From Lepidodermella squamata (lineage: Eukaryota; Animalia; Gastrotricha), in the NCBI GenBank assembly GCA_047495785.1, contig JBLDXI010000032.1:372001-436000 (forward strand): DNA of 64,000 nucleotides, in the 5' to 3' direction. Below are positions 13,067-14,985 of this stretch, piece after piece. The notes under the pieces were generated by a model that worked only from the letters and a program-made list of their open reading frames with translations, was not told the DNA's origin and did not search any database. The position numbers and the translations under genes are program-made. Every line of letters starts with the position of its first letter. Within the stretch, counting starts at the first letter, position 1.

Positions 13067-14985
13067 ATGTCGGCCACTCCTACTCCACGTGCTGCCGGTG
13101 CAAAGGCTCGAGGCGGGTCGCATAAAACGCCGATTTCGCGGTCGAAGCGAGCTGGAGTTTGCTTCCCAGTTGGGAGATTCCATCGCTATTTCCGCCAGAC
13201 TTTGAAAAAGACAAGAATTTCGTACGGCGCGCCGGTTTACACCGCCGCTGTTATCGAGTACCTGACCGCTGAAATCATGGAATTGGCCGGAAATGCGGCT
13301 CGTGACCTCAAAAAGACCCGCATCACCCCTCGGCACATCCTGCTAGCTGTTGCTAACGACGATGAGCTGTCGAAATTGCTAGATCACGTCACCATTCCAG
13401 GCGGTGGTGTCATTCCGAAAATTCAGCCGTTCATCGCGAAAAAATCCTTGCCACAGCTTAAGGCGCAGATTGGAGCTGGCTCTAGCAATGCGTCAGCCCC
13501 AACTCCTGTGGTTTCACCGATTCAGGTTAAGAAGAAGGCAGCCCCTGCCCCGAAACGGGCGGCAAGTCCTGTTATTGCGAAGAAGGCCCCGGCGAAAAAG
13601 GCAGCCCCCGCTGCGCCGAAGGGAGGCAAGAAGGGCGGTCGTAAGGCAGCTGCGGATGATGAGGCGAGCAACGCTGATTCTAATGAGGGCGAAACCGCGA
13701 CGTCATCCAAGCCGCAGTTGACGATTCTTTCCGAGAAGAAGTTGATTGCTGGCCAAAAATTGACCGTGGTGCAATCCGATATTACCCAGTTGTCTGTCGA
13801 CGCCATTGTTAACCCTACCAATGCGTCCTTCAACCTCTCCGGGGAAGTCGGTAAGTCTTCATTTTGAATTATTTAAGGAGGAGTTTTTTTTAATTGATGC
13901 GATTTTTCAGCTACTGCTTTGACAAAAGCGGGCGGGAAAGACTTTGAAAACGACGTGAAAGATTTGGCCGCTAAGCACGGTTCGCTCCAACCAACGCAAG
14001 GTATGTTTCTCATCTAGTGAAAAAATGCTTGAGAAAGCTAGTTAAGCTTGCAATTAGCTAGTCCTGGCTGTTGAGTTTTTGTGGATATGTGTGATTTTCT
14101 AACTTTTATACTTGAATTATCACTTCCACTTGCGTTGTGTGTAAACTTGATTCGTTTGATTTCAATCTATTTTCAAGCCACCATTTCGGCTGCGAGCTTT
14201 GCGGCTTGCAAATTTGTAATACACGCCAACGTCATTCCGGCGACCAACACCGACGATCTCGAACGTGCTGTTCACAACATTCTTGTCCAGGCCGATAAGG
14301 TCGAACTGCGGTCGATTGCCCTGACCGCCCTAGGCACCGGCAGGTAGGAGGAACACAGCTAAAATAATCGAAAAAATTAAGGTGGAGATGTGTGCTTTGC
14401 AATTTTGTTCACTTCGCAATTTCCCACTGAGTTTCTAACAAGACGATCTAATTTTTTGATGTGGTGCGTTACGTTCGACCAGGACTAGGAGCATACGCTT
14501 AGAAATACGCGCGCTTGCTTAAAATTTTCGCATTAAATTGATGATTGAAATGATAGCCGCTGCGGTTGCTGTCAGCCAGTCTGAGATAGCAGCCAAGTTT
14601 GTCATGTGTTGCAATGGGCCGACGTGGGCTCGGGCCGCCGAAACAACCACGGCCGTGGATGATCTCAGCGCTACGGTTAAAAATTGCCTGCGAGGGGCAG
14701 ATCGGTTGAACCTTGTGTCGATTGCATTCCCATCTATTGGATCGGGCCGGTAAAAATTGAAAAACTCCACCTTAATTTTTATAAATTATTTATTTTCGTT
14801 TTAATATTTTTTGATGTTTTTTCAGTGGTGGTTTTCCGAAGCAAACTGCAGCGCAAACAATTTTACACGCCATAAAGGACTATTTCGCGTCCGCCATTGG
14901 ATCTAGCATTAAGCAAGTCTATTTCGTGTTGTGGGACATGGAGTCGGTGGGCGTTTATGCCTCCGAACTGGCCAAGCTCGAATGA
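13067..14985 (+). CDS. MACROH2A: Core histone macroH2A (H2A fold + basic linker + macrodomain) with mutually exclusive exons 3A/3B
   Basis: Exons 13067-13850, 13911-14000, [14178-14343 OR 14557-14749], 14826-14985. [45 protein letters not shown]2A fold; Lys/Ala/Pro linker; macrodomain [48 protein letters not shown]. Confidence 0.95.

Follow-up and report, generated by a model that had tools for sequence, protein, structure and literature searches.

The macroH2A gene at the locus

The window, by which we mean the whole 64-kb stretch of DNA that was analysed, contains a gene for the histone variant macroH2A, in which an H2A fold, a linker and a C-terminal macro domain are encoded together. The assignment is based on Pfam matches, on identity to macroH2A.1 proteins and on RNA contigs that join the exons. 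Exon 1 matches the Pfam families Histone and Histone_H2A_C, and Pfam Macro is matched by exon 3A at profile positions 47-105 and by exon 3B at positions 45-105. Each exon was searched on its own, and the concatenated exons were used solely for checking the reading frame. The closest named proteins are macroH2A.1 from brachiopods, nemerteans and molluscs, with approximately 50% identity, and the best protein matches come from spiralians, not arthropods. The gene is composed of the following exons.

13067-13850, + strand: exon 1 of macroH2A, 784 nt; H2A fold, basic linker and start of the macro domain; frame open from the ATG
13911-14000, + strand: exon 2, 90 nt; constitutive; RNA joints to exons 1, 3A and 3B
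14178-14343, + strand: exon 3A, 166 nt; divergent macro-domain variant; RNA joints to exons 2 and 4
14557-14749, + strand: exon 3B, 193 nt; canonical macro-domain variant; RNA joints to exons 2 and 4
14826-14985, + strand: exon 4, 160 nt; last coding exon; stop codon at 14983-14985

As read from the sequence, every intron of the gene has GT..AG borders, and the GT..AG joint between exons 1 and 2 (13850/13911) is present in RNA contigs. The constitutive introns are 60 and 76 nt long, and intron 3, which lies between 3A and 3B, has a length of 213 nt. A PICK1-like gene (PDZ plus arfaptin) is located upstream of macroH2A at 11800-12700 of the window.

Mutually exclusive use of exons 3A and 3B

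Exons 3A and 3B are homologous and adjacent, and according to their Pfam profile positions they code for the same part of the macro domain. Their splicing is confirmed to be mutually exclusive, because both sets of joints, exon 2-3A-exon 4 and exon 2-3B-exon 4, occur in RNA contigs and a 3A-3B joint, which was looked for in these contigs, was not found. In the contigs of the public run X1, which behaves as RNA, the joint depths are 407 for exon 1-exon 2, 311 for exon 2-3A, 297 for 3A-exon 4, 186 for exon 2-3B and 187 for 3B-exon 4. One contig of a second organism (X2), which is approximately 95% identical, covers exon 2-3A-exon 4. A script check showed that the reading frame is broken when both variants are included and also when neither is; with double inclusion, translation meets a stop codon before the last junction.

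Over the 3A/3B region, 3B is similar to other macroH2A proteins, and 3A is the divergent copy. Exon 3A does not encode a CNGPTW-like segment and is nine residues shorter than 3B. The ligand pocket is for this reason probably not the same in the two isoforms. The acceptor region of exon 3B is purine-rich, that is, weak. In X1, the contig depth is higher for the divergent 3A (about 300) than for the canonical 3B (187), and 3A is the sole form seen in the low-depth runs X2 and X4. One X1 contig at depth 6 joins intron 3 to the opposite strand at the 3B acceptor (window 14447/14554); this joint is probably a cDNA strand-switch artefact.

Steric hindrance was considered as a mechanism of exclusivity and judged unlikely. 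Intron 3 has 213 nt, and of the branch-point-like sites that can be read from the sequence, even the most distal is located about 85 nt from the 3A donor.

The pattern could also arise with no structural control at all. On this explanation, exclusivity is produced by the frame incompatibility and by nonsense-mediated decay of the double-inclusion product, which is presumed here. Skipping of both variants gives a frameshift and double inclusion gives the early stop, and the two effects, with decay, could alone explain why single-exon forms are the sole ones seen. The ratio of 3A to 3B would then be set by splice-site strength and by protein factors, and any complementarities between the introns would be incidental. 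The weak 3B acceptor and the depth of 3B below that of 3A are consistent with such an account. We regard it as a real possibility that falls short of being probable, and the evidence from the introns, given below, bears on it in both directions.

Relatives available for comparison

A second haplotype of the gene, on contig C7, is 98-99% identical to the window. All arms of the two intronic stems described below, and both stems, are unchanged in it, so that it is uninformative about conservation. A diverged paralogue in the same genome was also sought, and only this haplotype was found. A single true relative was identified, on the metagenome scaffold L003, and both 3A and 3B are present there. 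The order of the PICK1-like gene and macroH2A is common to the window and L003. The exons of L003 are 72-81% identical to those of the window at the DNA level (about 75% overall), and its introns are unalignable with them. Comparison therefore covers two species with introns that cannot be aligned, which precludes a true covariation test. Three other contigs in the protein cluster of the relative are 98-100% identical to L003. Further relatives were sought by scanning metagenome contigs with a protein pattern from exon 4, by means of a degenerate DNA pattern from exon 3A and by a word search with the 3A peptide, and none was found. A search with the syntenic PICK1-like neighbour returned the L003 relative only, followed by proteins of approximately 70% identity from other phyla.

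In L003, exons 1 and 2 are joined without an intron (2540-2560), and the 60-nt intron 1 of the window (13851-13910) is absent. An intron has thus been gained or lost between these related species. The linker region of L003 seems to have an extra intron or a frameshift. One intron block is clearly conserved with L003.

14092-14109, + strand: conserved block in intron 2, TGATTTTCTAAC..TTTTAT; BLAST match of 18/19 to L003 2690-2708

This block, the only one of its kind, precedes the 3A acceptor by about 60-85 nt. It looks like a branch point and may act as one. Between the block and the 3A acceptor, there is no AG in the window, and there is one each in the C7 haplotype and in L003.

The near-identical haplotypes of the relative differ unevenly along the gene. 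Between L003 and contigs L027, L028 and L029, about 20 of the 198 nt of intron 4 (3345-3542) differ, against 2/226 in intron 3, 0/128 in intron 2 and 0/166 in exon 3A. The excess in intron 4 reflects either a recombination boundary or unequal constraint.

Proposed pairing between intron 2 and intron 3

The preliminary description of this DNA proposed that a 10-bp pairing of intron 2 with intron 3, here called stem I, selects 3B and that an overlapping local hairpin releases 3A.

14058-14067, + strand: upstream arm of stem I, in intron 2; CTAGTCCTGG
14479-14488, + strand: downstream arm of stem I, in intron 3; CCAGGACTAG; 68 nt before exon 3B

All of the elements named in this proposal exist in the sequence. 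CCAGGACTAG is the exact reverse complement of CTAGTCCTGG, and these are the sole two occurrences in the window. The extension TTGAG/TTCGA past a 3-nt bulge is present (14071-75 with 14474-78, including two G-U pairs), as are the overlapping hairpin (14036-43/14052-59; 8 bp, one G-U) and a second hairpin (14006-12/14030-36; 7 bp). The energy of stem I is -16.8 kcal/mol, which is thermodynamically plausible, and the local hairpins have energies of about -6 kcal/mol. In a transcript that ends before intron 4, where the second pairing described below is not applicable, stem I is stable enough to be predicted in the folding ensemble with P=0.97.

However, stem I does not rise above chance. A perfect intron 2/intron 3 complement of at least 10 nt is found in 8% of dinucleotide shuffles and also in 8% of segment pairs of the same geometry taken from AT-rich parts of the window. 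When G-U pairs and mismatches are allowed, the helix score gives p=0.29. Folding of 14001-14560, a check that the preliminary description had suggested, places stem I in the centroid structure, and the fold as a whole is no better than that of shuffled sequences (z=0.06). Both the chance level of stem I and this unremarkable fold are in line with the absence of structural control. In L003, the best helix between intron 2 and intron 3 is likewise at chance level (p=0.27).

Comparison with the relative also weighs against this particular stem. L003 has neither of the 10-mers, and its orthologous intron is missing some 47 nt that in the window contain both the upstream arm and the local hairpin. 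Lack of conservation in relatives is what the preliminary description itself had named as speaking against its pairing, and stem I in this specific form falls on those terms. The local hairpin is a weak competitor, with an energy of -6.1 kcal/mol and a predicted P of 0.02-0.13. Neither arm has a second selector, each having one partner within the gene. A docking-site/selector array of the Dscam exon 6 type, with a selector for each variant, was thus rejected. We consider stem I unlikely to be functional, and the scheme in which it selects 3B and the hairpin releases 3A, in its original wording, is improbable. What stands of the preliminary description is the identity of the gene, the homology and mutually exclusive use of 3A and 3B, and the plausibility of some long-range pairing.

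Possible pairing between intron 3 and intron 4

An inverted-repeat scan revealed another complementarity, which is not in the preliminary description. It is a perfect 16-bp match between 14372-14387 in intron 3 and 14765-14780 in intron 4, here called stem II.

14359-14387, + strand: intron 3 arm of stem II (perfect core 14372-14387); starts 16 nt past the 3A donor
14760-14791, + strand: intron 4 arm of stem II, or dock (perfect core 14765-14780); 10-42 nt past the 3B donor and 35-66 nt before the exon 4 acceptor

The core is located 29-44 nt after the 3A donor on one side and 16-31 nt after the 3B donor on the other. Via an internal loop, it can be extended to about 27 nt (14359-14387 with 14765-14791), and the energy of -20.7 kcal/mol then becomes -23.1 kcal/mol. 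Whole-intron RNAduplex energies gave unrealistically long duplexes, and ungapped helix scoring was used instead. By this score, stem II is significant against dinucleotide shuffles (p=0.0013), which argues against an incidental complementarity. None of the 69 genomic control pairs reached even 12 nt. Stem II is among very few perfect inverted pairs of at least 16 nt within 1 kb in the 64-kb window, and it is the sole such pair once simple-repeat and other repeat-derived palindromes are set aside. An Rfam search of the introns for RNA families or snoRNAs gave one sub-threshold chance match only.

The introns of L003 contain a duplex in the same regions. It pairs 2951-2982 in intron 3 with 3457-3488 in intron 4 over 32 nt, with four mismatches and four G-U pairs, and has an energy of -21.7 kcal/mol. 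The intron 3 arm lies 23-54 nt past the 3A donor, and the intron 4 arm is in the distal part of the intron. Stem II and this duplex thus have arms that are similarly spaced from the splice sites and that differ in sequence. The helix score of 39, against 25 for the reversed control, corresponds to a shuffle p-value of 0.0087; the arms are A-rich and T-rich, and shuffle p-values may be optimistic in such a case. A duplex of different sequence in the same intron regions of a second species is not what would be expected if the complementarities were incidental. Among the four near-identical metagenome haplotypes, there is one polymorphism in the duplex, which converts a G-U pair to an A-U pair.

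Taken with these results, stem II is a better-supported competitor of stem I than the local hairpin is. We place the probability that it is functional at about one half.

A motif shared by introns 1, 3 and 4

The 16-mer of stem II, AAAAATTAAGGTGGAG, contains the motif TTAAGGTGGA, which is over-represented 4- to 15-fold genome-wide. The genome has 124 copies of the 16-mer when at most one mismatch is allowed, compared with eight of the reversed control. The 10-nt core, TTAAGGTGGA, occurs 1160 times, compared with 296 for its control, and is found on both strands. In the usual context, an A-run is followed by the motif, then by T/A and a T-run. Copies are often found inside short introns, in either orientation, or near first exons, and one pair brackets a first exon. 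An origin as a transposon end was rejected: 20 genomic copies share only about 15 nt, and their flanks are unrelated.

Because the motif is over-represented genome-wide, two inverted copies could adjoin for a reason other than RNA pairing. In the absence of structural control, the 16-nt repeat would be two chance inverted copies of the motif, and the abundance of the motif on both strands, with unrelated flanks, suits such an origin. The local density does not. The window has sites of the motif at 14372-14387, 14765-14780, 13873-13883 and 20952-20962, and three related copies thus fall within 900 nt at macroH2A, where the genomic density predicts about 0.03 copies per kb.

TTAAGGTGGA could be a protein-binding site. 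The copies of TTAAGG[A/T]GGAG in introns 1, 3 and 4 would then be sites of DNA-protein or RNA-protein binding, and not pairing partners. The shortness and frequency of the motif, its occurrence in both orientations with unrelated flanks, and its frequent location in short introns and near a first exon would fit this role. However, the copy in intron 4 is antisense and would escape an RNA-binding protein, and the motif is absent from the introns of L003, yet complementarity persists there. A literature search for the motif yielded only unrelated matches and no such factor. We hold binding sites to be an improbable explanation of the three copies.

Two further cases of nearby inverted motif pairs elsewhere in the genome were set aside as large palindromic duplications. 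L031 (G000:C32:758900-761000) contains an inverted duplication of 1035 nt, perfect and with 24 nt between its copies, and L032 (G000:C1:4170000-4171100) a 139-nt palindrome of 97% identity. Both of these are either genuine or products of the assembly.

The copy in intron 1 is a possible decoy partner for the dock.

13873-13888, + strand: intron 1 copy of TTAAGG[A/T]GGAG; 15/16 complementary to 14760-14775 in intron 4

The duplex of intron 1 with intron 4 has an energy of -18.2 kcal/mol and a shuffle p-value of 0.013. Its significance is doubtful, since the reversed-sequence control scores almost as high (31, compared with 32).

Predicted competition between the stems

Stems I and II cross each other (14058 < 14372 < 14488 < 14780) and cannot easily coexist for this reason. 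Little reliance can be placed on predicted folds of RNAs of about 1 kb, and the following values are given limited weight. When the transcript extends from exon 2 to exon 4, stem II has P=0.81 and stem I has P=0.14 in the ensemble. When intron 1 is included, the minimum-energy structure contains 16 of the 16 pairs of stem II and none of the 10 pairs of stem I. In the ensemble of the same RNA, the values are P=0.93 for stem I, P=0.02 for stem II and P=0.79 for the pairing of intron 1 with intron 4. The two stems are thus predicted to be alternatives that replace each other in the ensembles, and in the model it is stem II that appears as the natural rival of stem I.

The intron 1 copy allows a switch with three sites to be imagined. 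The dock (14760-14780) would pair with one of two near-identical copies. Pairing with the copy in intron 3 would loop 3B out, and pairing with the copy in intron 1 would free the intron 3 arm, so that stem I forms and 3A is looped out. In such a case, the choice of macro-domain exon would depend on whether intron 1 had yet been spliced out. The switch would have evolved independently of vertebrate macroH2A1.1/1.2 and seemingly in a lineage other than the arthropods, its raw material being copies of a motif that is widespread in the genome. We think it quite unlikely that such a switch operates.

Proposed control of exon choice by dual intron pairing

The reading that we prefer is a dual intron pairing, similar to that of the Drosophila serpent (srp) gene, that biases the choice between 3A and 3B. 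The duplex of intron 3 with intron 4 is its credible half, and the chances for and against this reading are evenly balanced. The broader statement that some long-range intron pairing acts at 3A/3B is given the same middling probability. Formation of stem II (14359-14387 with 14765-14791) would loop out 3B together with both of its splice sites. The 482-nt intron from 3A to exon 4 would be shortened to an effective 50-75 nt, which is the size of the constitutive introns, and the 3A isoform would be favored. Stem I would have the opposite effect. It would loop out 3A, leave no more than about 125 nt between the exon 2 donor and the weak, purine-rich acceptor of 3B, and favor 3B. Errors that remain would be removed by the frameshift of double-inclusion and double-skip products. 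Any of these duplexes may form in vivo and affect the 3A/3B ratio, and we regard the locus as a candidate case, in macroH2A, of a mechanism that is known from other genes.

Comparison with known systems

The closest parallel is the bidirectional, or dual, RNA pairing at exons 4.1 and 4.2 of srp in Drosophila, where mutations that disrupt and mutations that compensate have validated both an upstream and a downstream pairing (Yue et al. 2016, PMC4691838). The four intronic elements involved are conserved in sequence across Drosophila (PMC4691838). Both loci have a cluster of two exclusive exons, in which an upstream-middle stem loops out the first variant and a middle-downstream stem loops out the second. 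In both, the stems cross and the aberrant products are frameshifted. They differ in that, at macroH2A, chance is exceeded by the downstream stem only, and in that the single relative preserves the sequence of neither stem. A further difference is that the gene encodes a histone variant. An upstream pairing of the srp type is at chance level in the window (p=0.08 for match length, p=0.29 for score) and in L003 (p=0.27). The downstream pairing is above chance in both of the species compared (p=0.0013 in the window and p=0.0087 in L003). The dual arrangement proposed for macroH2A is also what the evolutionary model of Ivanov and Pervouchine would lead one to expect (PMC6071210).

In Dscam1 exon 6 and 14-3-3xi, competition between a docking site and selectors loops out the unused variants (PMC6071210, PMC4691838). 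The macroH2A locus is similar to these in that intronic complementarity would loop out variants and bring the chosen exon near a constitutive splice site. In addition, the intron 4 element has two potential partners, in intron 3 (16/16) and in intron 1 (15/16). However, the arms of stem I have single partners, and the second partner of intron 4 lies upstream of the constitutive exon 2, and not beside a variant exon, in an intron that is missing from L003.

If stem II controls the choice, alone or together with stem I, the locus would offer a compact (<1 kb) and easily testable example of exclusive splicing driven by RNA structure, and it would do so in a chromatin protein of a poorly sampled invertebrate lineage. 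It would also support the view that tandem exon duplication readily produces competing intron pairings (PMC6071210), and it would offer a means of steering production towards one or the other macro-domain form of macroH2A. Should the pairings prove inert, what remains is a clean case of an independent pair of mutually exclusive exons in macroH2A.

When the literature was searched for mutually exclusive exons in macroH2A of invertebrates, no paper dealing with them was found. In vertebrates, macroH2A1.1 and macroH2A1.2 belong to the same family and likewise stem from two exclusive exons within the macro domain, and those exons encode a stretch of the domain closer to its N-terminus. Since 3A and 3B correspond to positions 45-105 of Pfam Macro, they look like the product of a duplication that is independent of the vertebrate pair.
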